Positions 4,194 to 63,942 are shown, counted from the first letter of the stretch. The stretch is 64,000 nt of DNA from Octopus sinensis (GCF_006345805.1 NC_042999.1:12648001-12712000); one strand, 5' to 3'. A program made the numbers and translations. The notes: generated by a model from the letters alone, not told the origin.

Positions 4194-4444
4194 GTTCTGA
4201 GTGTGTCTGCTTGCAGAAAATTTCACAGACATTCAAATAATCCATATGAAGAACAAGAAGTTGTTGGATTCTATCCAGGATTAAGCTGTGAGGATGCCAG
4301 ATACCCACTTAATAATTCAAATCCAGTCATTGTCAAAGAAAAATTTTGTCATCTCCTTGGACATAGTCAAATTGAAGTTGGCAAAGAAATAACAATAGGT
4401 TGTAAAAACTGCATTTGTATGCCTGGTGGAAAATTGAAGTGCAA
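4194..4444 (+). CDS. Exon 1 (in window): Cys-module C-half (FYPGLSCED) and half-VWC ([11 protein letters not shown])
   Basis: Acceptor ttgttgtttacag, donor AA|GTAAGT (phase 2). ORF 4203-4448. Confidence 0.85.
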
Positions 4445-7400
4445 GTAAGTGGCCAGGTACAGTTTATAATTAAATGATGTTTGAAAACAAGAATAAACAT
4501 AAATTTTACAGTCATTAGCTAGCAGAAAATAAATAGCACTTATTTTTTTTTTATAAAATATTACTTACATCATCATCATTTAATGTCCATCTTTCATAGT
4601 GGTATGGGTTGAATGGTTTGAGAGGAGTGAGGCAAGCTGAAGAGCTGCACCCATTGTCTGCTTTGGTATGGTTTCTATGGCTGGATACCCTTTCTCATGC
4701 TACCCACCAGTGCCAACCATCAGTGCTTTTTACATGGCACCAATGTAAGTGGAATCACCAAGTAACTTGCAGGATAATGACCTCTCAATTGGAAGAGGGA
4801 GTGGAACCAAGGGAGGTGGCTTTGTGTCAGCTGAGAGGTTAAAGTATAAGGGAGGGATAGAGATGAGTTAGTATAGGGTTACTTGGTTACCTGAGTGGGA
4901 TAAGAAAGGAGAGGAAGAAGATAAAGTGAGAGAGAGATGGTGGAACAGTGGTGGGGAGCATAAGTGGTACAGACGGGATAGAAGGGGATGTTCCATAAGA
5001 GTATGAGGGTAGGGGAAGAGGGAGCTGTAGCGAGTGGCTGGGGTGGGTGGGTGTGTAGTAGATATGTGAGGGCATAGAGAGTGTGCACGTAAGGTATATG
5101 AGGGTTAATGGAGGGGACTGTAGTGGGTGGTGGGATGGAGGTTGGGTAAACGGATTGTGAGGGAGGTGGGGCATGGCCGTAAAGGATATGCCTGTATGTA
5201 TGCATGGCCATGGTTTTACTTGGCTTGACATACAAATTTGATATTTCCTGCAGGTAATAAAAATAGTATAATTCCTTATTTTTCACAATATAATAATTAC
5301 AATTACTTGTCATTTGTAATAGATATTCTATATTAGAAGAATATTCCTCTCAAAATATTGGATTCGAATTTTGGCACAAGGCCAGCGAGTTTGGAGGAAG
5401 GGGCTGAGTTGATTAAATCAACCCCAGTGTTCAGCTGATTCTTATTTCATTGACCCTGAAAAGATGACAGGCAAAGTCAACCCCAACAGAATTTGAACTC
5501 AGAACATGAAGATGGACAAAAGGCTGCTAAGCATTCAGTCTGCTGACAATTCTGCCAACTCACTGCCTTATTCATATCAAAATATCAATAATTCTTTCCA
5601 TAATAGGCCCAGGGCTTGAAATTTTGGAGGAGGGGGAAACTTGATTATATTTTAATGACCCCTGAAAGGATGAAAGGCAAAGTTGACTTTGGCAGGATTT
5701 GAACTCAGAATGTAAAGACAGACAAAATGCCAGCTCTTCACCTTATATCAAAATATTAAGAATAAAAGAACATTTAAGTAGTGAACATTACTAAATATGG
5801 CAATTGGTATTTCGAAGAATACAAATATGTTAACTCTTTTGATATTAACCGACCTGAGACTACTCCTGGTTCTATGATACAAACTTCCTGTTTAAATTGC
5901 TCTAAATTAAAACCATCTTTCAAAATGTCACACTAATTTATACTCCAAACACTAATAATAACAAAATTAGCTTTTTCATTATTTTCAAAATGAAATGAAA
6001 CAAAGCAGTGTATCTGAAGAGAAATATGGTAACAAGACTTTAAAAAAATGTGATAGATGATATATATACTAATTAGAAACTGGAATTAAATATAAAAACT
6101 TTTTAATGAATTTATAATATTGTTCTGGAAAATTTGAAGAAAATTGTCAAAAGAAAATTAAAAAGGAATTAATTTGAATCTCGTTTATTCATTTGTGAAT
6201 ATGTTATTAGTTTGAGTTCAAGACTTGTAGATGTTTCAGGGTCTATAAAATAGTACCAGTCAATTACTTGGTGTAATTGACAGACTCCTCCCCACAAAGC
6301 TGCCGGCCTTGCGCCAAAGCTTGAAACCATTATTACCGTCTGTAAAATTCTTCATCTCATTGGAACTTGCTTATATTTTCCTAGATGTTCTGACTTAATT
6401 CTTCGCAAAGAAATTCGAGATTTCACCTGGGAAGAGATGGCCAAACTGCAGCAGGCTATTTCCCAGCTTCGTTTGTCAGGAATAGACAATATCTGGAATA
6501 AATACAGAGACCTCTACATGGTTCATCACATGCATTCACATGGTGGGGCATTCTATCTTCCATGGCATCGCCAGTTTTTGCAGCTTGTTGAATTGCAACT
6601 GAAAGAGATAGACTGCCATGTTACCTTACCATATTTTGATTTCACAACTGATGCTGCTAACTTCTCAGAAGCCATCATCTGGCAGCCCAATTTCTTTGGA
6701 GGAGATGGATGGGGATGGTGTGTTCCAGATCATGCTTTTGGTGACAGGTGACTATTTAATGTTGTTTTTGCATGTTACTCTTAAAAAGGAATTTTAATTA
6801 ATTAGTATTTCCCACAGTCATCATCATTATTTTCTGTTTGTTTTCCATGCTGGCATCACTTGAATGTGTCACCATGGTCTGTGTCTGTTCTTATTTGAAG
6901 ATTTTGTCCTGCTACATGGGTCAAAAGACCAAGCTTCTCATGTAGCTTGTGTTTGGGGCTTGGTTTCTAGTATTGTATATCTTTCCTGAATGTGCTGTGT
7001 GTGTGTGTTTCTGTGTGTACACAGAGTAATCTTCTTTTAAGCACTATTGCCACAAAACTGCATCCATTTGAATATAAACATCATTTTACTTCTCAAAAAT
7101 CCTATCTTTATTATATTCGAATGGAAAACATTTACTTGAGATCTTAAGATTAACATGATAATGACCACTAATCTTAAAATTAAGCTTGAATGAACCTATT
7201 TTTTGCTTTGTTAAGACTTAAGATTTTAAAAAGTGTGGTCAACATAAAAAAGAATAATTTAAGATTTGATTAAATTGGGATTTAATTAAGGGCAATTAAT
7301 ACTTCTCAGGCTCCTTTATATTATTAATTGTTCTTTTTTTTTTAACAGTAATGCTTGGAAACCATGCCTGAAAAGGAATTTCAGCCATATTGTTGAGGTC

Positions 7401-8040
7401 CCAACAATGCTTGATGTTGCTGCTGCCATCAGTAAAACAGATTTCATGGAAATGAGTGAACTTCTGGAGACATTTGCAGCGTATATCCATTCCTTTGTTG
7501 GTGGTGATATGTCAACGACTGCAATGGCTTACGACCCTCTCTTCTACATCATTCAAACCTACATTGACAGATTGTATGCCACCTGGCAGAAAATGGGCCA
7601 CAACAAATTTAAATTCCCAGCAGCCTATGGAAATATTCCAATGGTTCCATTCAATACGGCACCATTGGATGTTCTTGATCTAGAAAATGACCTCTGTGTG
7701 ACTTACAGTCCTCCAGGAAAGGGTCGACCATGCAACAAAACTGTTCATTTGCATGTGTCAGAGTTAAGTGCTGTTGAGAAAAATCCTAATATTCATGTGA
7801 AAATCATAAGTAGATCTGGTTATGATCAGTTTGGTTACAATTCCAGGGGCTTTGACCGTAGAGGCTTTAATAAATTTGGATATAACTATCATGGTAAGTG
7901 ATTTTATTTCTTTTTGTTACAATGTTTAATCCTGTTAGAACATAGATTTTGATAATAATGTTCTATAAATTGTCTCTCCATCTTTTTTTTGCGAAAGTAT
8001 TTTTGTCATTTAAAAGGGACATCTCGATCAATGTGTGTGT

Positions 8041-8100
<60 letters not shown>

Positions 8101-9581
8101 CGTGCGTGTACGTGCACATACACATAATCATTATCTTTTTTAATGTCCATGCTTGTAGGAGTCAGGTGGAGTTTATTGAGGTAGATTTTATACAGCTGGA
8201 TGCTCTTCCTGTCACAATCTCCACATATTTCCAAACAAGGTAATATTTCCCCATGGTCATTTGCAGAATGATACCGCTTGTATGACAGTGACACTCATTT
8301 ACAACTATCACATAATGACAAGTGAGTGAGACACACCCTTTCATGCTCCCACACATTATTCAGGTGCCCTCAATGTGTCCAGGGGTCAGCTTACCAAGAC
8401 TCTTCAGTTACTTTACTGGTTGCTTCTACCTGGATCATCATTGGCTGTGGGTTAATATGGAATGAGACCCCAGTCCCTTTTGCAATCACTGACCATCACC
8501 TTTTCAGTTTTGACCTATCCAGTCTTATGGCATGTCACGTACCCCACTGACATCACTTCAAGTCCATTGATCTGCAGTGTCTGCCATTTCAGGCTTTGTG
8601 TGCTTAAACATCAAACGCAGCCCTTTACTTCACTGCAACATCTGTGAAGCTCTCCATGAGCTAGATGTAGAGTGGGTGCTGAAGAGGGATTCTGGTCAGC
8701 CTCCAAAGGGAAGGAACTGCTTCTCATCTCTTGCATCCTACACCCAGTGTATGTGTGTGTGTATGTATATATACACACACATATATATTGTGTGTGTGTG
8801 TGTGTTTGTATGTATGTATATATGTATGTATGTATGTATGTATGTGTATATATAAAATGTTATATCTCACATTCTGTATTTGACATATACTTGATATTAC
8901 ATGATTGATATATATACTAATTCATATTTATAATGTATAATTTATAAATTTTAATTCTTAATATTAAAAAGTATAATTTTTATTCTTAATTTTTAATCTT
9001 TAATGCTTTATTGTATTGCTTATTTTTAAAGGGATGTAAAATTAGATATTAATATTTTGAAATAGAACCTGAAGATGTGTTGGAAAAAAAGCACCAACCG
9101 ATCGTGGCCGCTGCCAGCCTACCCTGGCACGTAAAAAGCACTCACTACACTCATAGAGTGGTTGGCGTTAGGAAGGGCATCCAGCTGTAGAAACACTGTC
9201 AGATCAGTCTGGAGCCTGGTGCAGCCTCCTGGCTTCCCAGACCCCGGTCAAACCATCCAACCCATGCTAGCATGGAAAATGGACGTTAAACGATGATGAT
9301 GATGATATGTATATATATGGGTATACAGTTGTGTAGATGTATATATATTTTAATCTTCCAATACTGAAACACATGTAGTTCCTTCATATTTAATAAATAT
9401 AAGATATAATTAATGAAGTATATTATATACCCTACTGGTAATTTTGGTTATATCCTTTAAGTAGTATTATTTTGTGGTCAGCAAACTGATACCATGGGCT
9501 TACTGTAGGATATACACATTAGGTTATTTTTGTATTATCTGAAATATAATACCCGCATATCAATTAATCCCCCAAAATTGA

Positions 9582-9615
<34 letters not shown>

Positions 9616-10280
9616 AAAATGAGAAAATGGAGAAATATACCTAAATCAATCATCAACCATCAGATAATACCCAATCAATACTTTATTAAACCATTACACA
9701 ACAGCAGTTATATTATACATAATATATTACAAATATAACAAGACATAGAAATAGAAATAGAAAATACATTTATATTGTAGCTGACAGCTGTTTCGGCCGT
9801 GAAGACAGGTATGTCCCATTTAACCTATTAGCTATATAAAGCAGGTATAAATGAGACATTAACAAGAATGTCTCACGGCCTCTTCAGAGAATTTAATGTA
9901 AGTATGAAAAAAATTTACATAGAAATATAAATATGTGTGTATAGACACTCATATTTCTACACATATATATATATACACAATAATACAATATAAACAATAT
10001 AGGTCAATATACATTAACAAACACAATAATGTTCTATATTGAACTCATAGTTCTATAACCAACATCAAGGAAATACATGTACACTCACATTTAAAGCAGG
10101 CATATATATTTAACAGTCCAGTCTATTAAAATGTGTAACCACACAAAAAAAAGTCAATAAAATTAATATTAATAATAATAATAACAACCATGATTGTACC
10201 AATTAAAGCCATATATACATATATATCTATCTATATATATATATATAATATATATATATATAATATATATATATATATAT

Positions 10281-10316
<36 letters not shown>

Positions 10317-13300
10317 AAAGTGCATGTTGGCAATGACTTTGGTGAATTTAGTGTGAAAGTAGGAGTGCCTCAAGGCTTGGTTGTCAATCTTATCCTATTC
10401 ATCATAGTTTTTCAAACCATTACTGAAGAGTTTAAGACTGGCTGTTTGTGGTTCCTCCTGATGATGTCTTGAGCTAACTGGATCCTATAAAGGAGCTGTT
10501 GTGGTAGCAGACCACGAAACACGGTTGTAATTCCTGGGAACTCATATGCTGATGATCTAGTCCTCAGCTGAATCTATTGGGTAATCTGTGAAGAAATTCC
10601 AGGCATAGCAGCTAAACCTAGAATTGAGGGGCCTTAAACCTGTCAAAGGCTGAGGATGTAGTTAGTAGGAAAAATATCTGGACTTTAGTTTCTTTGGGGA
10701 AATAACCTTGTTCTGTATGTAGAAAAGTGTCACATTGTTCTTGATGTAAACTATGGACACACAAGAATCACAGGCAGACTATCTAAGAAGGTAAACTTCT
10801 TATGTGATAGATACACTGGAGCAGTATGTACAAGCATACCTGAAAATGAATGTCTTAAATGCCTGGATGGCTCATTAGAAGTGGTTGATAGCCTTTGTTA
10901 CCTATGAGATGTAACTAGCAAGGGAGGCTGGTTGATCTGACAGTATAATTGCTCGAATAAGAAGTGGTTGGGGAAAGTTCAGGTAGCAACTACCACAGCT
11001 AATAACAAAAATCATTTCCCCAAGAGTGAAGGGCAGATTGTTTGATGCTTGAGTTAGAAGTGCAGTGTTGCATGGTAGTGAGACATGGGGCTTGTAAAGA
11101 TTGGAAAGAAAGAAAGTGAGCATGCTCTGTTGGATGTGCAATGTGAGGGTGCATGAAAAACATTGTACAAAGATGCTGTGTGAAAAACTGCATATAAAAG
11201 GAATCAGATGCTGTTTTCAAGAAATAAGGCTGAGACGGTATGGTCATGTGATGTATATGAATGCAGACAGCTGTCTAAAGAAGTGCCATTTGCTCAATAT
11301 AGCTGGAAGCAACAGAAAGGAAGACTCAAGAAGATAGAGAAAGAAGTGAAAGCTGACCTGAGAACCCTGAGCCTGATGGATGAGAACAAAGGACTTGGAT
11401 GAAACAGTGATATAAGGTTCTCAAAAAGGCACACCCTCCTCAGCAAGACTGAGTTCTGGAAGTGCTATAGTTTGGGTTCTCCAACTGTTATTGTGGCCCC
11501 TTCCTCTCATGTAGCACGTTTATCTCTTACCTTCCTCCTCTCTTCCCCTCCCCTCCTCAGCAATTGTATCCTTTCTGATACTCCTACTTCTTGCTCCCCC
11601 TCCCCCAACTCTTCTGCATCCCTCTAGTCTCATCCTCCCTATAACCTCACCAAATTTGACAATCTACCTTTTCCAACCCTCTTTTATACAATCTTACATA
11701 CCTCCTCCCCTCCACCCACTTCTGCCTTGTGGAGCACCTAAGCCCCTTATCCCCATTATCTATCTCTTGTATTTCCCACTGATCATTTTCTCTTTTCTGC
11801 ATTCTAGATGTGTGCAGCCATGCAAATCCCTCCGCAGCAACCTGCTCTGCCCCACCCATCACCACCACCATTCCTTAGTATGAAGCTAACCCTCCACCTA
11901 CTCCAGGGTTTATAGTCTTGGGAATTGCATGGCAACCTTGACAGTGCAGCTGACACAAAAGAAAAAAGCTCCTAGTCCGTGCTGTAAAGGGATTAGTTGT
12001 AAAAACCAGAAGCAGACATCGGAGCTTGATGCTGTCCTCGGACACATCAGCTCCTATCAACCTATGCCAGCATGGATGATAAATTGATGATATATATATG
12101 TGTGTGTGTGTGTGTGTATGAGAAAAAGAGAAGGTGGGGAGCAAAATGAGTAACCAGGGCAAAATGAGTCACTTTTGATATCTTCTTGTCAATCTCCCTG
12201 TTTGAAACCATTACATTGTAAGTATTGCATCATCATTTTGCATTACTACATTATACTTAGAAGTGAAAATTGGTCAGCATAGTTGTTGTTGAAGTTGAAG
12301 GAGTCTAAAATATAGTCAGGCGGCAAGTCCTCTTTTTTCGAGAAATTTCTCCTCAACTCTGACCTTATATTAATTGAGTTTGTTAAATACCAAAAATTTT
12401 CCAGATATTTTATTAGTGATCTTTTCTCTGTTGGTTTCCAAGTCAATTTTTTTTCCACATTAATGCCTAATTTGATAATTTTGAAGTTTAAAAAAATGTT
12501 TAGAATGGAGTAAAATGAGTAATGGCTAATTTCAATAATCTCTTCTCTTTAACTGCATGGTGTGTAAATATATCATAAAGAGAACACTCTAGCACAGTGT
12601 TTCCCAAACTTTTTGCACCAAATTGCAATATTGCACAAAAATGCTCCATCGTTCACCTGTTTAAAAAAACCCTGACACAACCCTGCCTAACATTAAATCC
12701 CTTAGGAAACCCCCACCCCTGTATCATTTGACACACATACTATATCGTAAGCTCATTGCCCTGTTAGTGCCGTTTGAACTAAATATGCGGTTGTTTACAA
12801 ATCCTTTATCATGGGTTTAGTTTAGCCATTAGTGTAAATAAAAGTCTAACGTTAACTCTATATTATGCTGCCAAATTAACTTCTGGAAACTTGCGCTTTC
12901 TTTTGCCCTGATTTTCATTTTCCCCAAATGAACCATTCATCAGAACTACCGACGCAAAAATGATGAATGATTTTATCATTAAGGAAAAGAATACAACTTT
13001 TTAATGAGAACCATGTGTCTGGTGTAAAGTAGCTAGTGCAGATACATTTGATTTCAAACTTGTCAACTTTAGCCACAAGTCTTGTTGTTGTATTACATCC
13101 AGTCTAATGAAGTGGATAGTGGAGTATTTTCAAAGAAAAAGATATGTAAAACGGTTCAACAAAGCATAAAGCACAGTTTCCTTTTGACAGCCACCGCACT
13201 TCGATATGGTATAAGAGTTTATTATAGTCCTCATCATTTATCAGACAGAGTTGACGGAAAATTTGATCAGACAAGGAACTGGACTTCAATTTGTCCACAG

Positions 13301-14872
13301 TCTTGGTAACTAACTGTTGTGCATCATTCAATCTGCTGTTCATATTTTTTGCCACTAAATGCTGCCGGTGTGCCAAGCAGTGAACAGTTAGTGTCTGGTG
13401 GGAAATTTCACGCTTTACGAGAGATGGAAAAATCTCTGTCCTTCTATCATCGAAGGGGTTCCATCAGACGCACAGGCAAGAATATTACTGAGTGGGATAT
13501 TATGTTCAAAAAGGAAAGACTTGAAAGTGTGAAAAATGGTTGCACCTTTTGAATTAAGTGGCAATTTCTCAGTGAACAGCATTTCCTGACAAGGTTGAAA
13601 GTCTTCACTGAAATACCGAACACACACCATCATCAACAGTTGATTCATCCACTTGTATAGAAAGTTCAGAACATTAATGAGCTGATGTTTGACATCGTTG
13701 GCCCTTTTCATCGATGCGTCGAGAAATTGTTATTGCCAAGTGGGATCTTCTTCATAATGTTATCATGTTTTTCGTGTATAACGGTTGATAAACCTCTTCG
13801 ATGATAACTGGGCGAAGTAATGTTTCTCCAATTGTGTGAGACTTCCCAGGCTTAGCAACAAGCAATGCAATGTTGTACGATGCAATCAACCCGTCATTCT
13901 CCTGTTTCCTAGAGTAGCGTGTTGAATGTTTGGATTTGCTTTTTGAAAGAGGAGCTCAGTTGCAAAAAGTATGCTAACGGCTTGTCCTTCTTGCCAGAAT
14001 GCTTTGCATCAAAGTAATAACTTCAAGCATGAAGGCTTCGTTGGTCAATGTTTGATGGCAAAGAAGACACATTGGTAACGGGCAGTTTTGAGGAGGGAAT
14101 AAATCCAAACGATAAATAATCACTACTGCACTGTCGAGAAATGTTCTTGACTTGAGGCATCAGTAAAGTGAAAATGAATTTCACTGGATGGCGTCTGAAA
14201 GGCAGTATGGTCTTCCCAAAGAGAAGAAGTCATCGATAGAGCAGAGTCAGATGACACGTCTTTACTGGAGCAAATACGGATCTAGTTCGTTTGGCTGCCA
14301 GCATTTCATAAATTAAAATTTGATCATTTTCACCCAGTCAAGAAACACGATTTCTAAGCTGTCATTTTGTGCGTGACTGCACATTTTGTCAACATCCTTG
14401 TATTTTGATATGAAACCACAGAATTACGCACGACATAACTTTTTTTTTATTTTCCGGAGTTTTCAGAAAATTTTGGCAAATTTGAATTCTATATGCGGGA
14501 CTTTATGCCTATTTGGCTGCTATTTTTAGCCCGCATGACAACCATCTCGATGACTGCGACAAAAACATTCAAGCGATACACAAGTCTGCTTTTTTTTTTA
14601 TATACTCATGCGAGTAGTCAAATCGATAAAAGTGCATCCTTATTCTAGACATGCTCAGATATAGGTAAATGCAGACTTGGCTGCCAGCCTCCCCTGGCAC
14701 GTAAAAAACACCCACTACACTCATGGAGTGGTTGGCGTTAGGAAGGGCATCAAGCTGTAGAAACACTGCCAGATCAGACTGGAGCCTGGTGCAGCCTCCT
14801 GGCTTCCCAGGCTCCGGTCAAACCGTCCAACCCTTGCTAGCACGGAAAGCGGACGTTAAATGATGATGATGA

Positions 14873-14919
<47 letters not shown>

Positions 14920-14970
14920 TACATACATATATATATATACACATGTATATATATATTTATACATATATAC

Positions 14971-15052
<82 letters not shown>

Positions 15053-25747: not shown

Positions 25748-25782
<35 letters not shown>

Positions 25783-26096
25783 TACATACATACACACACA
25801 CATACATACATACATACATATACATACATACATACATACATATACATACATACACACACACATACACACACACACAGTATTGAAGCTTGAGAACAATCAG
25901 ATACATTTGCAACACATCTGTTGAAAATATTATTGTTCACACACATACATATACATATATACATACAGACAGACAGGCAGATAGACACACACACACACAC
26001 ACATGATCCAGCATGGCCACAACCTCAAGGCTGAAACATATAAAAGAATAACAGAATATAAATGTGTGCATGTGTGTGAGAGAGAGAGTGTGTGTG

Positions 26097-26128
<32 letters not shown>

Positions 26129-51930: not shown

Positions 51931-51962
<32 letters not shown>

Positions 51963-52809: not shown

Positions 52810-52845
<36 letters not shown>

Positions 52846-55800: not shown

Positions 55801-58800
55801 TTTGCAGCATCACTGCAAAGTGAGCCATCTTCCATGTGAGCACATTTCTCTCCTGTGACATCATGATTCTCTCTTACATACTGTCTTGTAATATGAAACA
55901 CTTTGGCCCTCACATTGCAGAACATTGGCAAATTTTTTCTTCTGCTTTCCCTCTAGCTAAGTAAACCTGTCTCGTAGCTTCCCTTCTGGTGATCGGATAC
56001 TACTGCACTTCCAGTCCTTCCATGCATGTTTCTTTTCCCTAATGGCCTTGTCAACTACATTGTTCCACCATCACGTTACCTTAAGTTGAGAGGGGGCTTT
56101 GCACTATCCACAGATCTCGTCAGTAGCCCGCAACAGGTTGTCCTGTAGGAACTTCTAGTTGTCTTCCACATTATGTGATGCTACATCCTCCTGTTTGTTG
56201 TCAAAAGCTTCAAGTAATACGTCTCTAAATCTCTGTCCTTAAGCTTCTAGGCCCTTCTTTTCCATGCTGGTCATCTTCTGGGCATCCATTTAGCCCTGAT
56301 CCTGAAATTGCTGACTGCTAACCTATGTTGTGGGGTGCATTCTTCACCTGAGAAGATTTTGGCATTTATAAGTAGCCATTTTTCTCTGTTCCTGATAATA
56401 ATGTAGTCAATCTGACTAGTGTCCTCACCAGACAGGTGACTGGCAGGTTTCCTGAAGTTCGTAATTACAGATCATCATTTGCATCACAGAACTCCAGCAG
56501 CTTGGTTCCCTCCTCACTGTGGGAACCAAATCTGTAGCCTCCAGTACACCATGGAAGCTCCCTGGATGTTGTCCAATATGCCTGTTGAAGTCGTCAGCCA
56601 CAAAGATCCCTGTCATTTGTCAATGAGGGGGTCTGCAAAGGAGTGTTGTAAAATCTGTCTTTCTGTTCATCAGGTAGCCCTGGCTGAGGGGCAGAAGCTG
56701 AGATAATGGCTGTTAATCCATGTTGCAGTACTAGTCGAAGCTTAAGTATTCTGTCACTCTGACTACTTTGATTACCTTATCAACCCATTTCTCCACAAGA
56801 AGTATACCGACGTCCACAACCCCATCAGTGTTCCCTACCCAGAAAATCTTATACCTATGTTCTTTGCTTGTGAGGAGCCAAGCAGAACTTCCTCTCCACC
56901 TTACTTCTTGGATGCAACACAAATCTACATGTCTCCGTTCAAGCATTTCAACACTCTCACTAGACCTACTTTTCAGTGTGCCAACTTGGGGGGTGTGGAT
57001 GACGTGGGCCAGTGAGACCCTGGGATGGGAGACAGCAGCATCATGCATCTGAAAAGAAAGCTCACATTTGGCAGACCTCGTAAACATACAATAGCCTTCA
57101 ACCTGCATACACTATCATTTTATGCGCTACATAATCACTACATTCCATAGGAGATAGACGCTGGGTAAGGATGGGGGAAGCATTCCGTATAGTAAGCCAT
57201 TGGAGGTACTCTAGACAAAGATATCCAGTAGAGGTTAGAGGATAAAGACTGCTGGGATGGGAGGGTGCACCATAAAATGGCAAAGCACTATGGCTGCTGA
57301 TGTAAATGAATAACAATAATAGTTATTATAAAGAGCAGTGTTGAGGGAAATAGAATTGAACATTTTAGAAATTGTAAAACATATGATTTATGACTGTAGA
57401 TTTATATAAATTTTGGATGAGGACATAGTGCAACAGTGAGGAGTCTTATGAATGGGTAAATAGATATTTAAACATTGTACTGCTTGCAGAAACAACCAAA
57501 CAATGTTCTTCATTATCATCACTACCACCATCAACAGCCTCATCATTATCATCATCACTACCACCATCATCATCCTTTTGCTGTTCACCTTTTTATGCTT
57601 GCATGGGTCAGGTACAATTTGAAGTAGATTTTTCTAGGGTCAGATGTCCTTCTTGTCACTAACCCTAACATTTGCCCATCATTAGACATTTTCCCACCAA
57701 AGATTGAAAAAAATGTCTCTGCTTATATAACAGTGACTCTCATTTACAATTATCACTTGATGAATAACTTAATAAGTGAACAAATTGGATGAATTCACTT
57801 TATAGATACAAATGATTGGATGTAGGGTGGCAGTTTGGGTCTGTTCCAGCTTCCTTCCTGTCAAGCCTACTTTTGTATGTCCAATGTTGTTTAGTCCTCA
57901 GTTTGCCGTAATTCAGTAGACCAATGCTGAAAGATATCTCTGGCGGATGTTTGTACTGTCTTTCCAAATGTGAGGGATTTTATCAACCAATGTGAATTTT
58001 TCTTTTAGATGACTGGGTGTGTTTGGGGGACTTAGGCTACTACTTTTGCAGAGTAAACAACCTTATTGTGGTTTTCTCATTGGTGGTGGCCACATGGATA
58101 TGAGTGGAGTGGACTCTTATAGCAATCTGTTTTGGTGTATTTTTCAAGGTTGTAAAGATGAACACAATCGACATAGACCTGATAAAACATCCTGGATCAA
58201 CTCTGAGTGCAATAATTGTACCTGTAAGGTAAGGAGAGTTTATTTACTCACTAATCATCATCATCATCATCATCATCATCATTTAATGCTCACTTTTCCT
58301 TTCTTGCATGGGTTCCTCCTGGCCTGACATGTTTTCATAGAATATTGCTTCTATGATGGTAACATTCATTTACAACCATCACAGGACGTAAAGACAATAA
58401 CACACACACACATACACACACGCACATACACACACACACATATGTATATAAGGAGCTTCTTTCAGTTTCCGTCTACCATATCCACTCACAAGGCTTTGGT
58501 TGGCCTAGGGCTATAATAGAAGACACTTGCCCAAAGTACCATGCAGTGGAACAGAACCTGTGACCATGTAATTGAAAAGCAAACATCTTAGCTATTCCAC
58601 CTTGCGTACACCTGCCATTTTGTTGTTCTTAAATATTTCTGTTGAAATTCATTTCTTTTGTTTCAAATAATTTTGAAAATATGTTAAACTAATTTTATCG
58701 TTATTAAGCTCAACTTTGAGGCATAAATTAACAGGAAATTTTTGTGCAAATTTATAAAATAAATGACTTAAAACAGGAAATTTTTTTTCTGTCATGGAGC

Positions 58801-60778
58801 CAAGTCTGTCTCAGGTAGGTTTCTATCAAAAGGGTTAAAACACATGAATTATATTAAATAGATAAATATACTACACTGGATTTGTTCTTTTGTTTTATTA
58901 ATGTTTGTTTTCCCATGCTAGTATGGGTAAGACAAGGAGTTATTTGAGGCAGGAATTTTTGCAGCTGAATGCTTTTCCTGTCACCAACCCTTCACCAACC
59001 CTTAACTATTTTTCAAGTAAAGGATTTTTCATTTTATTTCAAAGGTCTTCCAAAGCGTGGAGCAAACCAGTCCTACTCTCAACAAAGAATGACATTATTT
59101 ACATAGGGAAGCATGCACGCACACATCCATCCTCCCCCCTATCTCTCCTTCTCTCTCAAGCTTCCTTTAGTTTCTTTCTATTAAATTCACTTATGTGGCA
59201 TTGGTCTGCCCAGTGCTATAGTAGAAGATACTTGCTGAAGGTGCTGCACAGTGAACTGTTTGCAAAGCAAACTTTTTGATCACGCAGCCATGCTTTGTGT
59301 CTCTATGTGATAAAAAACAACAAAAATTCCGTCAGATTTTCAAACATTAGCAGCTATTTTTGTACTTAAATGAAAAGACATTTAGAAGTATTTGGACCAT
59401 TTTTTCTTCTTTCATATTGTAGGAGATGGTCTAAAATTAGAGAATTATTTCATTTTTCTTGCTTTTAACTGTAAATCTCTGATTATATTCATCAACCCAT
59501 TTATTTTCCTCTTTTTAACTATATTTCTTCAGTCAGATTTTATTGACTGTCAGCCTGTGCTCTGCCCTGAGGTTTCATGTCTCTTCCCTGCCACAGCTAC
59601 AGGGGAATGCTGTCCAAGTTGTAAAGGTAAGCCATTCTAAAAGAACAACCGTTTCCTCTTCCAGGTAAGTCAAACAGGTGTGCTTCGTGCTTTATGTCTT
59701 TATGTAATGTCTTTAACAAGATTTAAACTCATGATTATGCTTCCATATATTTGTTGAAAGAATAAGTGTTAACCTCTTTGTTACCATATTACTGCTCAAG
59801 TGCATTAATTTTGGAAATAAGGAAGAATTTAGTAAAATAATTTTGTCTTTCATAAACTGGTGTTTGTAACATGAAATTTTGAGGGAATGTTTTAATTTAA
59901 ATCATTTTAAAACAAGAAAGTTTTTTTTTTGTATCCTTGAAGCAGGGGCAGTCTAAAGTGGTGGTCGGGTATCAGAAGAGTCAAACTCCATAAATGTGAA
60001 GTTCTATATTTAAGAGATGAGGAATTATTTACATTATTTACATTTGAAAGATATTTGTCCTTATCTTATTTGTTGTTAACACAGCGTTTCGGCTGATATA
60101 CCCTCCAGCCTTCATCAGGTGTCTTGGGGAAATTTCAAACCTGGGTTCTCATTCCTAAGTTTATTTTATGATGTTATTATTATTATTATTCAGGTCACAG
60201 CCTGGAATCGAACTCGGAATCTTGGAGTTAGTAGCCAGCGCTCTTAACCACTATGCCATATGAGGACATATCTGTCAAATGTGAATAATGTAAATAATGT
60301 CCATAAATGTGGTTAGTTCTTTTTGTCTCATCGTTCTGTTAATGGAGTATAAGTTTAATTAACTGCATCGTTATTGTATATTGACAGGTTTTTTTTTTAA
60401 ATCTATATTTCAGTTGGCTGTAATTATGATGAGAATTTCCATGCCTTGAATAGTTCCTTCACTCCTTCCACGGACCCCTGTCAAACATGTTCTTGTCAGA
60501 AAGGCAATGTGTTCTGTGAGGAAAAAGTGTGTACTTCTCTTGATTCTTGTCACACACCTGTTGTTCTGGCTAACGAATGCTGTCCTACTTGTATGGACTG
60601 TGGTCAACATCCCAATGGCTCTCAATGGATGGAAGGCCACTGCCAACATTGTGTTTGTTTGGTAAGTTTTCTTGTTATTTTTCTAATTATCTTTCACTCA
60701 TTTTGATATGGCTTTCCGTTAAAAAGGAAACATATTTTCTTACATATTTTCCTTTTTGAGAATGTGATGTCTACATAT

Positions 60779-60815
<37 letters not shown>

Positions 60816-63800
60816 GACACACACACACACACAGACATTGATACTAATTCATATCTAATTACAAATCACATTATCATTATTATTGTTCATGTGTCCACTT
60901 TTCCATGTGGGTAGGGGTCATTTGGAGTTTGTTGAGGCAGATATTCTAAAAGCTGGATGCTCTTCGTTTATTGAAACGGTCACCTGTTTCCAAGTAAGGT
61001 AATATTTCTCCATGGTCAGACATGTTTTTCTCAGAAGACTGGAAGTGAACAACTTCACCTGTATGATGGCGATGGTAATTTACAATCATTGTGTAATATG
61101 AAGATAAGGGTACACACACACACACACACACAGAGGCTTCTTCCAGTTTCTTTCTGTGAAACTGACTCACAGGGCTTTGGTCGAACCAGGGCCATTATAG
61201 AAGTTACTTTCCATATTGTGAGTGAAATTGATCTGCCTGGGCAGCACACTCAGCTGTTCTTGCTCCTTGGCTGATGAAATACCTCAGAGGCTTCAGAAGG
61301 CAACTGATTCCTTCAGGGCTCTTTTGAGTCTTATATCCAGTCCCAACATGGCATCACAAAGCAGACAAAAGTTGTTGTGCACATTCTGTGTGTGTGTGTG
61401 TGTGTGTGCGTATTCTGGCATCACTCCTTTACTCATATGAGACATGGAGCCTTTACTGGCATCATGTAGGAGACCTTGAATGCTTCCATCAGAGATGTCT
61501 CAGACATGTTCTGAATGTTGGCTGACTCCAGGAACAGAACTCTTGAAAAGAACAGATGTCCTGAGCATTGAAACAACGGTGCACAAGCACCATTTACATT
61601 GGATTGGACATCTTGTTTGGACGAATGATCAGAGGATGCCTAAACAAACTCTGTATGGTGAACTTGTTTGCGGAGAGCCCAGAGCAGAAATCAAGACTAT
61701 GATTTAAGGATTGTGTAAGATCCTCGTTGAAAGCATGGGGAATATGGGAAGCCAGTTGGGGAAGCAATGCTTGTTACCACCACCAATGGAAAAAGAGAAA
61801 CCAAGTAAAGGAAGGAGGAGGAGGAGTTGGTGTTTTTGAAAGAAACATGCACTTTCCATGCAGAATTTAAGTAAGCTGCTCAAGAACGCACAACCTGTGC
61901 AGTGGATGTTTATCAAGGGCTGAGCTTATTAGTCACCGGCAAAGGCCACAAGTGTAAAGTATAAATTTGTCTGAGTTTACAATATTCTTAATGGTCAGTG
62001 ATGACCTTCAGTCACAAGTGAGCAGCTATAATTTGTGTGTGTATGCATGCATGTGTGTATATATGGATACGTATATATGTGTGTGTGTTTGTGTTTGTGT
62101 CATATAAGTTGTATATGATGAAGACAAGTGTCTCTGTCATATAAGCTGTGTCGTACATTTCCAGTTTCTCTTAAAAATATGTTTGGCTATTTGCTTCCAA
62201 GATATATCTCGCAGATTCCCTGGGATGCATCATCGGTGGTGTTTCTGGGATCTTACAGGGTTCCAGGTCTTTCAACATCAGCCTCCCTTGCACAGTTGAC
62301 TCACCTGAGATGCATCAATTTCCAGCTTGCATCCCAGCAGCAAACCACTGGGCTCTCCTTTTTATCTAAAGGCAACTATTAGCCTTCTGTGCAGCTTCAG
62401 TGATGGAATTTTTGACCCTAGCAAACAGGAAGTGCACCCAACTGTAGAAAATCTGCCTTAGGGAATTCTGTTTCACCCAACCAAGTACAGGAAAATGGAT
62501 GTTAATTTGATGATGGGCCCTTACTGCTAAACTACTTCTCTGCATCTATGTCTGAAATCTTGCATTTCTGTGAACCTGCCTGTGATCCCACTGTGTCTCT
62601 TGGATTTTTATACATTATTACATTTGATACAAAGTATGAAATCCTTTGTCTACCATTTTGCCATTTTAAGTATGGCCTCTTCTCAGATGGTAACAATGTT
62701 TTGAAGAGTTCTTTATTCTTTCTTGCTTAGAATTTGTGAACTTAATTTTTAAGACATTTTCTCTTAAAATTGAATGATTTTCAGCTCACTTATAAATTAT
62801 CCTCTGTAATCTTCTACTTTAATGTTTTATATTTGCACACACACACACACACACATTGAGTATTTTAACTTCTGATATTGCAGAATGGCACTGCCAAATG
62901 TGAGCAAAAGGTGTGTCCATCAATTGAGTGTAAATACCCGGTACTTCCTGATGGAGAATGTTGTCCTCGTTGTCATGGTAACATATTTCAGGCAACTGAT
63001 TATTTTATTCTTTTTATGTGAATAATTTATTAATGTTTCAAGAAAATGTATTCTTTATATATTTTTCATGTTTTAGTTTTAAAAAACTGATTTTTCTGAC
63101 AAAAGCATTTAAAAACACAACTGTAGTGTACCGGTCTGCTTTGTTTCCCTATGTTCCTGCAGCCATCTGACTGCATCCAACCCTTGCTTATAGCCATCTT
63201 TCACTCTATGCTGTCTTCTATTCACTTCTTTGGTCATACCCGCTTGAGATTATGTTCTGGCACCCCTCCAGCCACCCATCTAAAATGTAAAGCAACCACG
63301 AATCTCCTCCACAACAAACCTCTTCCTAATCCTCCCATCATACATTACCTTCCCAACACCTTATATAAAGCCCCCGCACCATCTCCTGTTCCCACTCTTG
63401 AGCTAAGAAGCCTGTTGGTCTTGTGAGTTACAAGGCAACCTCACTAGTACTGGTGCCATGGAAAAGTTTCTGGTACACTCTGTTAAGTGTTGGCATTTGG
63501 AAAAACATCTAGCCATAGAAACCATGTCAAAACTGAGACATTGGTGCAAGATGTCATCCTCCAAGCCATTGGATTCTGTCTAACCATCCAACCCATTCCA
63601 GCGTAGAAAGCAAATGTAAAAATGTCATTTACTATCAATTAACGTCATGTGATCTATATATTTGTGCTGATATGTGTGTGTGTGTGTGTGTGTGTTACCA
63701 GGATGTTAAAAGCATAAAAAAATATCTCTGTAAATCTGAAAACAATTCTGTTTTTCTTGTAGACTGCCTGGTTGATGAGAAAATAGTATTGAACGATGAT

Positions 63801-63942
63801 GTCTTCACACTTTCTGGAAATGGATGCCAAGAATGTTACTGTAGCCAAGGGGATATACTGTGTAAAACAGTCGACTCCTGTGATAAACTTGATTGCAGGA
63901 ATGTCATAACACCAAAAGGAAAATGCTGTCCTCAGTGCAAAG
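4194..63942 (+). CDS. Partial multi-exon gene (18 exons, 5' and 3' ends outside window): extracellular-type protein with 2 degenerate tyrosinase-like domains, G(F/Y)(D/N)xx repeats, EGF, Kunitz and >=4 VWC domains
   Basis: Manual splicing gives GT-AG introns with matching phases at all 17 junctions (2,2,1,1,1,1,1,2,1,2,2,1,1,0,1,0,1), 5140 coding nt with no stop. Domains split across exons rejoin correctly (Kunitz, VWC, tyrosinase). Confidence 0.9.
5365..5745 (-). mobile_element. Two adjacent degenerate tRNA-derived SINE copies
   Basis: Both carry ggcaaagt(c/t)(a/g)ac...atttgaactcagaa, the reverse-strand B-box region, as in the copies at 37683 and 43177. Confidence 0.65.
6385..6747 (+). CDS. 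Exon 2: tyrosinase-like domain 1, N-terminal part (RKEIRD...[12 protein letters not shown]...LPYFDF...FFGGDG)
   Basis: Acceptor ttttcctag, donor AG|GTGACT (phase 2). CuA-type H-x8-H motif. Confidence 0.93.
7349..7893 (+). CDS. Exon 3: tyrosinase-like domain 1, C-terminal part (CLKRNF...IHSFVGGDM...YDPLFY...WQ) and first GYD repeats
   Basis: Acceptor tttttaacag, donor G|GTAAGT (phase 1). ORF 7407-7901. Confidence 0.93.
9084..9306 (+). mobile_element. RTE-family 3'-end copy
   Basis: aaaaagcacc...ggttggcgttaggaagggcatccagc...catgctagcatggaaa...(gat)n. Confidence 0.8.
9779..9890 (-). ncRNA. Hammerhead ribozyme-like motif (Penelope type)
   Basis: Minus strand CTGAAGA, stem II GGCCGTGA/TCACGGCC, GAAA, palindromic stem III ACAG/CTGT, GUC triplet. 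Stem I has only 2 bp. Confidence 0.6.
10310..11460 (+). mobile_element. Degenerate RTE-clade LINE RT/C-terminal fragment
   Basis: VKVGVPQG, a following YADDLV motif (tatgctgatgatctagtc) and RRYGHVMYM; multiple stops and frameshifts. Confidence 0.8.
12595..14160 (-). mobile_element. hAT (Charlie/Buster, ZBED5/SCAND3-like) transposase pseudogene with one TIR
   Basis: HRQHLVAK...IFRQLC...[13 protein letters not shown] and [13 protein letters not shown] on the minus strand. CAGTGTTTCCCAAAC TIR-like end at 12595. Confidence 0.85.
14679..14876 (+). mobile_element. RTE-family 3'-end copy followed by long (TA)n/(TACA)n
   Basis: Same 3' consensus and (TGA)n tail. Confidence 0.8.
14877..15047. repeat. 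Compound (TA)n/(TACA)n microsatellite; similar tracts at 296-328, 1760-1838, 8030-8110, 25707-25876 and elsewhere
   Basis: Direct inspection. Confidence 0.95.
15470..15658 (+). CDS. Exon 4: G(F/Y)(D/N)xx pentapeptide repeats
   Basis: Acceptor tttctgcag, donor G|GTTAGT. Translates [36 protein letters not shown]. Confidence 0.9.
16648..16890 (+). CDS. Exon 5: GYD repeats and CNYSFKGPF linker
   Basis: Acceptor atccatttcag, donor G|GTAAGT. Matches CNYYFNGPF in exon 11. Confidence 0.9.
18690..19830 (-). mobile_element. 5'-truncated CR1-like LINE (RT C-terminal part and 3' UTR)
   Basis: [14 protein letters not shown]...KYADDIKL...VDKC...DLGVIVDS.L...[13 protein letters not shown]. The two ORFs are in one frame, separated by a TAG where Trp is expected. 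Confidence 0.9.
20380..20625 (+). CDS. Exon 6: Cys-rich module copy 1 (CPC...[28 protein letters not shown]...VDC)
   Basis: Acceptor ttttgtcag, donor G|GTAAGT. Cys spacing matches exons 12+13. Confidence 0.9.
21604..21762 (+). CDS. Exon 7: EGF-like domain and start of Kunitz domain
   Basis: [12 protein letters not shown]...[12 protein letters not shown] is the EGF consensus. Acceptor cttaacag, donor G|GTAAGT. Confidence 0.93.
21905..22695. repeat. 123-bp inverted repeat pair (21905-22027 and 22573-22695)
   Basis: The arms are reverse complements with 2 mismatches. Confidence 0.9.
22716..23701 (-). mobile_element. Solo LTR (986 bp), Ty3/Gypsy-like
   Basis: TG...CA ends, 10/11 terminal inverted match (TGTAGGAATAT / TGTAGCAATAT), CTAG TSD at 22712-22715 and 23702-23705. 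It interrupts an RTE tail. Strand is inferred from a minus-strand TATA-like ATAAATA (~23480) and AATAAA (~22906). Confidence 0.75.
24771..24978 (+). CDS. Exon 8: Kunitz/BPTI domain, GACC motif, start of GYD repeats
   Basis: GSC...RWYF...[17 protein letters not shown]. Acceptor tcttttacag, donor AA|GTAAGA (phase 2). Confidence 0.93.
26320..26580 (+). mobile_element. Mariner transposase fragment (pseudogene)
   Basis: LEDEP...LKTLVEQN...ELAEKL...[17 protein letters not shown] contains the mariner WVPHEL motif and an internal stop. Confidence 0.85.
26596..27229 (+). mobile_element. Non-autonomous Helitron
   Basis: A|TC start, cccgagcaacgccggg hairpin, CTAG|T end. Its 3' ~100 bp are nearly identical to those of 3540-3921. 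Confidence 0.8.
27625..27965 (+). mobile_element. SINE with tRNA-like head and RTE-type tail (degenerate)
   Basis: Head ...gcttcccaatcacgtggtttcaagttcagtctcactg; tail aggaagggcatccagctgtagaaa. Reverse copies near 53310-53690, 58300-58600 and 60880-61200. Confidence 0.6.
28289..28398 (+). CDS. Exon 9 (not in ORF track): [10 protein letters not shown]...NGYDWH
   Basis: Acceptor aactttcag, donor G|GTGAGG. Phases 2/1 bridge exons 8 and 10, and it contains GFN/GYN/GYD units. Confidence 0.82.
29424..29645. mobile_element. piggyBac-type MITE (~220 bp)
   Basis: CCCTTTTGTTACCA ... TGGTATCAAAAGGG|TTAA. Related copies at ~5834-6035, 17833-18035, 58625-58834 and 59772-59985. Confidence 0.75.
30009..30174 (+). 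CDS. Exon 10: GYD repeats
   Basis: Acceptor tctctattgcag, donor AG|GTGAGA (phase 2). ORF 29981-30178. Confidence 0.88.
32411..32727 (-). mobile_element. Young-looking RTE-family 3'-end copy
   Basis: (atc)n tttagcgtccgctttccatgctagc...; very similar to 2026-2487 and 52848-53019. Confidence 0.85.
33333..35108 (+). CDS. Exon 11 (1776 nt): Cys-module C-half, half-VWC, complete tyrosinase-like domain 2, GYD repeats, linker
   Basis: 580-aa ORF 33370-35112. Acceptor tttttacag, donor AG|GTAAAC (phase 2). Motifs RKEIRD, FLPWHR, PYYDW, FFGGNG, CLRRHF, WVGGHM, YDPLFY. Confidence 0.95.
35470..36060 (-). mobile_element. Internally deleted RTE LINE fragment
   Basis: WFGQVMHMD...CIQKC (C-terminal region) joined to [20 protein letters not shown] (pre-RT linker). 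Confidence 0.75.
37683..37895 (-). mobile_element. tRNA-derived SINE with 16-bp TSD, inserted in a piggyBac-type MITE
   Basis: TSD acaccagttaaataat at 37667-37682 and 37896-37911. Minus-strand B-box GAGTTCAAATTCC. Confidence 0.85.
38775..39100 (+). mobile_element. Penelope-like element GIY-YIG endonuclease remnant
   Basis: C..C...NC...NVVYSLRC...YFGEM...S.L.EH...VKVL resembles the PLE VVY-C-YIGET-H pattern. Runs into the gap. Confidence 0.6.
39111..39210. other. Assembly gap (100 N)
   Basis: Run of exactly 100 N; true size unknown. Confidence 0.99.
39211..42642. repeat. Minisatellite, 34/36-bp unit (AC)5-6 AAGAC ATACATACAT AAAACTCAT, roughly 100 copies
   Basis: Unit measured at 40745-40778 (34 bp) and 40779-40814 (36 bp). 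Confidence 0.95.
43177..43379 (+). mobile_element. tRNA-derived SINE with 17-bp TSD and a deleted B-box
   Basis: TSD aatatttggctggaaat at 43160-43176 and 43380-43396. Confidence 0.85.
43462..51179. repeat. Tandem satellite, 64-bp unit, about 120 copies, with an internal 24-bp palindrome
   Basis: Unit gcttcaaattgtttcagctatttatcaatattgatccttaaggatcaatatctgtgatatttat; period 64 measured at 43531/43595. Confidence 0.97.
51194..51288 (+). CDS. Exon 12: Cys-rich module copy 2, N-half
   Basis: Acceptor tgcattttacag, donor G|GTAAGA. FCLE...[21 protein letters not shown]. Confidence 0.88.
52525..52626. repeat. Near-perfect fold-back hairpin (~50-bp arms)
   Basis: Arms are complementary except for a 2-nt bulge; the centre reads actttCTaaagt. 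Confidence 0.9.
52848..53019 (-). mobile_element. RTE-family 3'-end copy
   Basis: Same consensus and (ATC)n tail on the + strand. Confidence 0.85.
53767..53859 (+). CDS. Exon 13 (not in ORF track): Cys-rich module copy 2, C-half ([20 protein letters not shown]...VVEC)
   Basis: Acceptor tgtttctag, donor G|GTACTT. Completes the module seen intact in exon 6. Confidence 0.88.
53917..57300 (-). mobile_element. Near-full-length degenerate RTE-clade LINE (APE + RT, internally deleted), antisense to the host gene
   Basis: [16 protein letters not shown]...VGIL and DFNRHIG; RT region ...AFDRV; C-terminal HGSEIW...[10 protein letters not shown]; 3' UTR tandem units and (TGA)n tail. The YADD segment is missing and the 5' boundary is approximate. 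Confidence 0.9.
58149..58228 (+). CDS. Exon 14: VWC1 N-half
   Basis: Acceptor ttttcaag, donor AAG|GTAAGG (phase 0). GCKDE...[12 protein letters not shown]. Confidence 0.85.
59533..59626 (+). CDS. Exon 15: VWC1 C-half
   Basis: Acceptor atttcttcag, donor G|GTAAGC. ...GECCPSC. Confidence 0.88.
60040..60262 (-). mobile_element. SINE with tRNA-derived Pol III head, (AAT)n spacer and hammerhead-containing tail
   Basis: A-box TGGCATAGTGG and B-box-like GAGTTCGATTCC on the minus strand, upstream of the hammerhead. Confidence 0.7.
60078..60123 (-). ncRNA. Minimal hammerhead ribozyme-like motif (U16.1>C in this copy)
   Basis: GACAC CTGATGA A GGCTG-10nt-CAGCC GAAA CG CT GTGTT: 5-bp stem I, 5-bp stem II, cores intact. 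Confidence 0.65.
60414..60661 (+). CDS. Exon 16: VWC2 and N-half of VWC3
   Basis: Acceptor atatttcag, donor TTG|[21 protein letters not shown]...ECCPTC. Confidence 0.92.
61215..61900 (+). mobile_element. Degenerate RTE (BovB-like) LINE C-terminal fragment
   Basis: [10 protein letters not shown] and HLHWIGHL...[11 protein letters not shown]. Confidence 0.7.
62884..62977 (+). CDS. Exon 17 (not in ORF track): VWC3 C-half ([31 protein letters not shown])
   Basis: Acceptor gatattgcag, donor G|GTAACA. Confidence 0.9.
63763..63942 (+). CDS. Exon 18: VWC4; gene continues beyond window
   Basis: Acceptor tttcttgtag, donor G|GTAAAA (phase 1). [13 protein letters not shown]...KCCPQC. Confidence 0.9.

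Follow-up and report, generated by a model that had tools for sequence, protein, structure and literature searches.

The 64,000-nucleotide stretch of the Octopus sinensis genome considered here (GCF_006345805.1, NC_042999.1:12648001-12712000; hereafter the window, with positions counted from its first letter) is A+T-rich, with ca. 36% G+C, and displays abundant microsatellites and interspersed repeats. Its plus strand carries 18 exons, between positions 4194 and 63942, which join into one coding sequence comprising two tyrosinase-like units, EGF and Kunitz domains, Tyr/Asp-rich repeats, and VWC domains. We consider it probable, short of firm confidence, that a single, very large gene spans the entire window and extends beyond both its ends, this being the octopus orthologue of a giant secreted 'kielin/chordin-like protein' of bilaterians, for which we use the working name Kielin/KCP-like.

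An initial annotation, made from the sequence alone, had proposed a single spliced open reading frame (ORF) of more than 1700 residues at this locus, and the independently rebuilt model bears this out: the 18 exons join in frame over 5140 nt, equivalent to 1713 codons without a stop, AG and GT flank every exon boundary, the phases are compatible at each donor/acceptor pair, and Pfam confirms both the domains and their proposed order. The bounds given for the ORF match splice sites to the nucleotide, 4194 being the first acceptor and 63942 the last donor. Stop-to-stop ORFs on the plus strand, comprising one frame of 610 codons (33280-35109) and shorter Cys-rich or Gly/Tyr/Asp-rich frames, were anchored by tblastn with homologues, followed by splice-site scoring; the chance probability of an open exon of 592 codons at 36% G+C, calculated from base composition, is ca. 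3e-19. The same annotation spoke of a giant modular protein, of which the modular single ORF stands; this ORF is, however, only part of the protein, since the gene begins upstream and ends downstream of the window.

Pseudo-tyrosinase unit 1 (4194-20625) is encoded by six plus-strand exons. Exon 1 (4194-4444) is preceded by part of an intron, which occupies the first 4.2 kb of the window, and by a further exon outside it, upstream; it displays a phase 0 acceptor and encodes a Cys-rich, half-VWC-like lead-in with 97.6% identity to residues 535-619 of the O. bimaculoides protein P0121. The tyrosinase-like domain is divided between exon 2 (6385-6747), which encodes the CuA half with 96.7% identity to P0121, and exon 3 (7349-7893), which comprises the CuB half, with Ala at ligand position B1 and Gln at B3, and the first G-[YF]-[DN]-x-x repeats. 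The Tyr/Asp pentapeptide repeats of unit 1 continue in exon 4 (15470-15658; 93.8% identity to P0121 residues 922-985) and finish in exon 5 (16648-16890), which also encodes a helical region and whose product aligns with proteins of Patella, Tegillarca, and Argonauta. Exon 6 (20380-20625) closes the unit with a 10-Cys module lacking a Pfam family, and ends in phase 1 at the consensus donor AGAG/GTAAGT.

Further along the plus strand, exon 7 (21604-21762) encodes the EGF domain (Pfam, 5.8e-06) and the first Cys of Kunitz domain 2, and exon 8 (24771-24978) the remainder of the Kunitz domain (4.3e-17), with canonical six-Cys spacing and Ser at P1, followed by a CC linker. Exon 9 (28289-28398) was found because the frame between exons 8 and 10 demanded an exon of 110 nt; its pentapeptide repeats match residues 607-644 of the Elysia chlorotica protein P0134 and are also present in the Argonauta protein P0222, and exon 10 (30009-30174) supplies additional Tyr/Asp pentapeptide repeats ahead of unit 2. 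Whereas five introns, the longest of 7.6 kb, interrupt unit 1, the paralogous unit 2 lies entirely in the 1776-nt exon 11 (33333-35108), which comprises a Cys-rich lead-in, the tyrosinase-like domain, repeats, and a helical region, and ends in phase 2. This single large exon seems widely conserved, and many database 'proteins' of 550-630 residues are its ORF-caller read-throughs; the 'complete' proteins P0001-P0020 of that size were considered as stand-alone genes and rejected, since they start in a polypyrimidine tract ('...F.RAG') and end with 'R*' at an AG/GTAA donor. The Cys module closing unit 2 is encoded by exon 12 (51194-51288; first half) and exon 13 (53767-53859; second half). VWC 1 is split between exons 14 (58149-58228) and 15 (59533-59626), exon 16 (60414-60661) comprises the whole of VWC 2 and the first half of VWC 3, exon 17 (62884-62977) the second half of VWC 3, and exon 18 (63763-63942) VWC 4, ending in a phase-1 donor from which the gene runs on past the window. 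Phase 1 is shared by many introns of the locus, which would allow exons to be skipped in frame.

The spliced model therefore reads, from N- to C-terminus, as tyrosinase-like unit 1, EGF, Kunitz, Tyr/Asp-rich repeats, tyrosinase-like unit 2, and four VWC domains, Pfam recovering Tyrosinase twice (3.9e-21 and 7.9e-24) and, across exons 14-18, four tandem VWC stretches (4e-33). Each unit comprises (i) a Cys-rich lead-in, (ii) a type-3 copper fold, (iii) pentapeptide repeats, (iv) a helical region, and (v) a closing Cys module; at E <= 1, Pfam assigned no family to the repeats, to the helical region after them, or to the closing modules of 8-10 Cys. The Tyr/Asp-rich repeats, at model residues 355-475, 725-850, and 1190-1335 (exons 3-5 and 8-11), follow a strict pentapeptide, G-[YF]-[DN]-x-x, with 52 motifs, a spacing of exactly five in 34 of the 43 successive pairs, and a composition of 18-21% Tyr plus Phe and 21-25% Asp plus Asn. 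Arrays of the same repeat extending over hundreds of residues, again without a Pfam family, are found in bacterial proteins (P0074, P0062), examples of the carriers being an Enorma DUF6273 protein, UvrD-like helicase-domain proteins, and TrbI/VirB10 proteins; the bacterial and animal repeats may be related by homology or by convergence. The Kunitz domain satisfies the cysteine spacing C-x8-C-x15-C-x7-C-x12-C-x3-C, and its P1 residue is non-basic, unlike the Lys or Arg of trypsin-type inhibitors, with Ser in the window and in Argonauta, Gly in Lingula, and Glu in Thunnus, while Kunitz 1, in the upstream part of the O. bimaculoides protein, displays His. With Ser, His, Gly, or Glu at P1 across species, these domains are unlikely to act as trypsin-type inhibitors.

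Full-length relatives were found by an exhaustive HMMER search; a word-indexed homologue search with Cys module 2 and the four VWC domains as query gave no match, and the C-terminal architecture was consequently taken from the exhaustive search. BLASTP of the 1713-residue model against Argonauta hians GAB1599713.1 (3774 residues) returned a single high-scoring segment pair with 80.3% identity and 8 gap positions, by which the 18 exons are equivalent to residues 446-2150 of a protein of ca. 3800 residues. The same order is preserved in Lingula anatina XP_013412584.1 (4190 residues), with two Tyrosinase, 30 VWC, and one VWD domains. The layout of the Argonauta, O. bimaculoides, and Lingula orthologues comprises, in order, (i) a signal peptide, a NELL-like region, a coiled coil, and VWC, followed by EGF and Kunitz; (ii) unit 1; (iii) EGF, Kunitz, and G-[YF]-[DN]-x-x repeats; (iv) unit 2; and (v) ca. 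20-30 VWC and a VWD. On the N-terminal side, the partial O. bimaculoides entry A0A0L8IDI7, with 94-98% identity to exons 1-4 and 96% over the part in common, displays 534 extra residues comprising a hydrophobic signal-like segment, the NELL-like region, VWC, EGF, and the first Kunitz domain; this part matches NEL/NELL2 (PDB code 9oz6; E 6.5e-06) over the TSPN end, the coiled coil, and the first VWC, and the Lingula protein begins with a typical signal peptide. On the C-terminal side, Argonauta P0222 has another 1624 residues beyond the part equivalent to the window, made up of VWC repeats with a VWD at the end; 20 VWC domains were detected in the Argonauta orthologue, and the C-terminal VWD in Argonauta (2.1e-31), Lingula (1.4e-36), and shark (9e-38). 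This architecture supports the view, already taken in the initial annotation, of a secreted, modular protein.

The longest interruption of the model, intron 11 (35109-51193; plus strand), spans 16 kb filled with satellites and holds an assembly gap, an N run at 39111-39210. A 34-bp satellite (39211-42651; ca. 99 copies, 90% matches) starts directly to the right of the N run, and a 64-bp satellite (43462-51179; ca. 121 copies, 94% matches) stops 15 nt short of the exon 12 acceptor. The exon 11/12 junction is in frame ('...PVPDPR/FCLETN...') and contiguous in the Argonauta, Amia, and Elysia proteins, and the alignment to Argonauta reveals no missing residues there; by this comparison, the gap alters the length of the intron only, without coding loss. 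Since consecutive parts of one protein flank the gap, the scaffold join can be argued to be correct.

The ligand positions of the two tyrosinase-like units were assigned from phmmer alignments with squid and other hemocyanins and with Streptomyces and Priestia tyrosinases, together with a MAFFT-based ligand table. At positions A1/A2/A3/B1/B2/B3, unit 1 displays Tyr/His/His/Ala/His/Gln, keeping three of the six His (A2, A3, and B2), with the A1 column being the least certain, and unit 2 displays Tyr/Ser/His/Leu/Gln/Val, keeping one (A3). A six-His copper site was found in none of ca. 45 family domains from molluscs, a brachiopod, arthropods, an echinoderm, a hemichordate, amphioxus, a shark, and ray-finned fishes, and B1 is His in none of them. 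With the copper ligands missing, it is well supported by these alignments that neither unit could hold a binuclear copper center or function as an oxidase and that their role would be non-enzymatic, in agreement with the earlier proposal of a type-3 copper fold reused for a non-enzymatic purpose, the ligands being lost in both units and in every relative examined. The fold itself is predicted to be intact: an AlphaFold2 model of exon 11, built on a 54-sequence alignment, reached a predicted local distance difference test (pLDDT) score of 82.5 and a predicted template modeling score of 0.85, and a Foldseek search with this model retrieved bacterial (Priestia and Streptomyces) tyrosinases with TM values of 0.72-0.75 and an E value of 1e-14. 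In addition, the models suggest that the pentapeptide repeats probably fold against the tyrosinase-like core instead of forming a floppy linker, with pLDDT 86-94 for the repeat region inside the whole unit and 56.5 for the repeat and helical regions modeled alone, a drop that, to the detriment of this interpretation, may partly reflect the shallower alignment (17 versus 54 sequences).

The units are more alike across phyla than within the octopus protein. Unit 1 shares 40-43% identity with crinoid, amphioxus, Ptychodera (196-815), and Lingula (454-1070) units and ca. 30% with its own unit 2, which in turn shares 40-44% with shark, Limulus, Amia, Ptychodera (1031-1512), and Lingula (1294-1933) units, and both units are carried by octopods, Lingula, and the hemichordate. 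On these identities, the two units are ancient paralogues, and their duplication and the loss of the copper site would predate the protostome-deuterostome split, being already present in the bilaterian ancestor; the single-unit models of other lineages could represent either real losses or incomplete annotation. A Cys-x3-His-Pro-Phe motif ('CVRYHPF', exon 11 positions 213-219) is invariant, together with Cys176, Cys230, and Cys353, in 54 of 54 aligned units, from fish to molluscs. Active tyrosinases presumably display Gly-Pro-Phe at the position of the family's His-Pro-Phe, and the conserved His might mark a new site.

By analogy with known extracellular modulators, the most likely function of the octopus protein would be that of a secreted, matrix-bound BMP/TGF-beta-binding scaffold. 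The protein would be retained by the matrix or by the cell surface, like Kielin, KCP, and Crossveinless-2, and its VWC array, together with the VWD, would bind BMP/TGF-beta-family ligands and matrix, shaping ligand availability. The N-terminal coiled coil may oligomerize the protein, as in NELL and thrombospondin, and the dead-tyrosinase units would contribute rigid modules for binding or spacing, without enzymatic activity. More tentatively, and as a possibility that we hold to be well under even, the dead tyrosinase, the G-[YF]-[DN]-x-x repeats, and the closing Cys module may together constitute an unnamed, ancient class of non-catalytic domain with a binding function of its own, of which the ancestral bilaterian Kielin-like gene would have held two copies. 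Were this the case, the targets of the cassette could be, for example, a phenolic, quinone-tanned, or calcium-rich matrix, or a growth-factor partner; the domain class would have been retained in sharks and ray-finned fishes, maybe as an optional or alternatively spliced cassette, and be absent from mammalian KCP as described, so that its function would be missing from what is known of mammalian KCP.

Two readings at odds with this picture concern the unity of the gene and the activity of the units. The exons could belong to two or more separate tandem genes, the first ending after the Cys module of unit 1 ('CETVRGK*', past the donor at 20625) and the second beginning at the EGF exon at 21604, an arrangement that we regard as improbable. 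Read-through of the donor meets a stop two codons on, which makes a terminal exon at the end of unit 1 conceivable; the NCBI Gnomon model of Patella (LOC126809496) ends likewise ('...ERGKFQKI*'), stand-alone single-unit models of ray-finned fish stop directly after the Cys module, and hexamers resembling poly(A) signals are present in the 978-bp interval. Such AATAAA-like hexamers are, however, expected by chance at 64% A+T, the donor is a perfect consensus whose phase fits the EGF acceptor, and the intron (20626-21603), searched for signs of a separate gene start or end (first exon, signal peptide, terminator), gave only one weak ATG candidate of 15 codons, and the EGF exon lacks its own start codon and signal peptide. 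Moreover, the stand-alone model of Amia is nested within a larger gene on the same strand, and the junction is crossed by proteins of four other species: Tegillarca granosa P0123 passes from unit 1 to EGF at residues 777 to 778 ('...DCYAERD/FCDPNPC...'), the Elysia marginata model joins them at the splice point of the window, and the Argonauta and Lingula proteins are likewise continuous. Colinearity with single Argonauta and Lingula proteins, and the Tegillarca and Elysia marginata models spanning the critical junction, thus speak for the initial assignment of all exons to one gene. Still less credible is an active phenoloxidase, in which one or both domains would bind metal and oxidize phenols, perhaps those of the protein's own Tyr-rich repeats. 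The tyrosinase fold is kept, unit 1 retains A2, A3, and B2 with extra His residues nearby ('HHMHSHGG'), and the family's C-x3-H-P-F motif supplies an invariant His, but the complete set of six ligands occurs in none of the ca. 45 sequences, which also never place His at B1, unit 2 retains a single ligand of six, and the substitutes, Ala, Leu, Gln, Val, and Ser, do not ligate copper.

The main rival to a growth-factor modulator is a bulk matrix protein, cross-linked through disulfides and tyrosines and destined for cuticle-like layers, egg cases, or a shell or eggcase matrix, which we judge to be unlikely yet deserving of serious weight. In such a protein, the VWC and VWD domains would polymerize, and genuine oxidases would cross-link the Tyr-rich repeats. 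In the Argonauta eggcase matrix, no proteins are more abundant than the 'kielin/chordin-like' VWC proteins, which occur in the shells of Lottia and Crassostrea as well (bioRxiv 10.1101/2021.07.10.451900), although the eggcase contigs are VWC-only by the description in that paper and their origin from the present gene is putative. The protein is very large, with a C-terminal VWD in its orthologues, and its non-basic Kunitz P1 (Ser) would be common in structural matrix proteins; the aromatic and acidic/amide content of the repeats given above also fits this role, but the structure prediction shows them ordered and packed, hence less accessible as substrates, and the gene has been conserved in lineages that make neither shells nor egg cases, among them shark, amphioxus, and horseshoe crab. 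The structural and signaling-scaffold roles are, in any case, mutually compatible.

Several points weigh against a single Kielin/KCP-like gene encoding a non-enzymatic BMP-binding scaffold. The cross-species supports are all computational gene models, the Patella model terminates by read-through just past unit 1, and annotations split the locus, into three in Elysia chlorotica (EGW08_010326/010327/010328) and into two in Ptychodera. The name 'kielin/chordin-like' is automatic, derived from VWC similarity, and is no proof of orthology to mouse KCP or Xenopus Kielin; Pfam recognizes no LamG/TSPN family in the N-terminus of the O. bimaculoides orthologue; the three His of unit 1 may bind a single metal ion; and BMP binding by the octopus protein is argued purely by analogy.

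Taken as a Kielin/KCP-like gene, the locus is the middle of a gene for ca. 3800 residues and not a stand-alone protein of ca. 1700. The accompanying suggestion that it was no named gene and possibly an uncharacterized family does not hold, because orthologues are already annotated as 'kielin/chordin-like protein', O. bimaculoides A0A0L8IDI7 is a near-identical database entry, a kielin/KCP-like gene of the bowfin contains the cassette, and such sequences of more than 3000 residues have been remarked upon in print (PMC11667028). The gene is instead the octopus member of a widely annotated, functionally unstudied form of Kielin/KCP-type gene and not a new family. Several public models are fragments of this one gene, including the nested 'uncharacterized' gene of Amia and truncated O. 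bimaculoides entries, and similar stand-alone fish models probably are too. The three Elysia chlorotica models are neighboring partial models on one contig that together make up one Kielin-like gene, and the two Ptychodera flava models, XP_070532926.1 and XP_070576623.1, do so jointly. It appears that two copper-less tyrosinase cassettes have been part of the BMP modulator of the Kielin/KCP type from a time before the protostome-deuterostome split; a pseudo-enzyme conserved for so long must have some role, which mouse KCP cannot reveal because it lacks the cassette. These observations are relevant to workers on BMP modulators and on pseudo-enzymes.

Besides the coding exons, the introns display several repetitive elements. 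An interspersed repeat of ca. 180-320 bp, probably a SINE-like (short interspersed element) sequence, occurs in both orientations at 2037-2485, 9125-9305, 14695-14879, 32400-32800, 52843-53018, and 53918-54089, with copies 77-94% identical, some containing sub-repeats on a 60-bp scale, and every copy intronic. The minus strand of intron 5 (18826-19737) carries an antisense fragment of a retrotransposon of the non-LTR (long terminal repeat) type, of which the ORF at 19528-19737 matches RVT_1 (5.2e-11) and the adjoining ORF of 228 residues has no Pfam match; among ten intronic or antisense ORFs searched against Pfam, this RVT_1 fragment was the one match, the other nine giving none. In the intron upstream of exon 1, a plus-strand ORF at 2855-3247 encodes 130 residues rich in Ser, Glu, and Asp from an ATG start; its piggyBac-derived or transposase-like appearance was not borne out by Pfam, which gave zero matches.

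When placed among known systems, the two units resemble tyrosinases, catechol oxidases, and hemocyanin units in their four-helix-bundle fold, with PF00264 recognized in both, and, as in molluscan hemocyanin, a type-3 copper domain occurs more than once per chain. In contrast to these type-3 copper proteins, the copper ligands are lost and the units are embedded in a VWC/VWD protein; molluscan hemocyanin comprises seven to eight units of tyrosinase plus beta-sandwich, whereas here two units are separated by EGF and Kunitz domains. A relationship to hemocyanin was considered and rejected: Pfam detects no Hemocyanin_bet, the ligands are gone, and repeats, a helical region, and a Cys module stand in place of the beta-sandwich. 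NEL and NELL1/2 share the LamG/TSPN-like end, the coiled coil, and the first VWC, all upstream of the window, but proceed to EGF repeats, whereas the octopus-type gene proceeds to tyrosinase-like units and a 30-VWC array. BMPER/Crossveinless-2, which modulates BMPs outside the cell and can be anchored to the cell surface, likewise displays a VWC array followed by VWD, with a GDPH autocleavage motif that recurs in the Lingula orthologue ('FGDPHYRTFDG') and reads GKTH in the Argonauta orthologue; BMPER differs in that it stops at five VWC and lacks both the cassette and the NELL-like N-terminus.

Xenopus Kielin and mammalian KCP (CRIM2) are likewise secreted proteins with a long chordin-type VWC array and a terminal VWD. 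Kielin comprises a thrombospondin-N-like N-terminus (TSPN), 27 cysteine-rich (CR) repeats, and a VWD. The published description of mammalian KCP gives 18 Cys-rich repeats and a VWD but no EGF-Kunitz-tyrosinase-like cassette (PMC10315795), and mouse KCP binds BMPs, enhances BMP signaling, and suppresses TGF-beta/activin (PMC10315795, PMC6829314). Compared to mammalian KCP, the octopus protein displays two cassettes and is ca. 2.5 times larger; enhancement of BMP signaling is known from the vertebrate members alone. The cassette is nevertheless contained in the shark 'KCP', and in Amia ocellicauda (bowfin; CM071091.1, 39975217-39998795, reversed) the tyrosinase-like LOC136750261 (704 residues) is nested, on the same strand, in a gene with a VWC-rich product of 2338 residues, with EGF and Kunitz exons just upstream of its annotated start; the locus is colinear with the shark 'kielin/chordin-like protein' from the N-terminal part and EGF, through Kunitz to the tyrosinase-like domain, to the Cys module and VWC. 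This nesting and colinearity place the cassette, as far as the genomic sequence can tell, inside the kielin/KCP-like gene in at least one bony fish, LOC136750261 being either an optional cassette or a split annotation. As for the literature, we found no study of the pseudo-tyrosinase cassette, only a passing remark in a 2024 paper that some spiralian tyrosinase-domain sequences exceed 3000 residues and carry kielin/chordin-like domains (PMC11667028). In the databases, relatives from brachiopods to sharks bear the name 'kielin/chordin-like protein', including Argonauta hians GAB1599713.1, Lingula XP_013412584.1, shark XP_060698749.1, and others. Closest of all, and both known as unreviewed computational annotations, the orthologues Argonauta GAB1599713.1 and O. 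bimaculoides A0A0L8IDI7 present all modules in the same order and no structural difference from the octopus gene.

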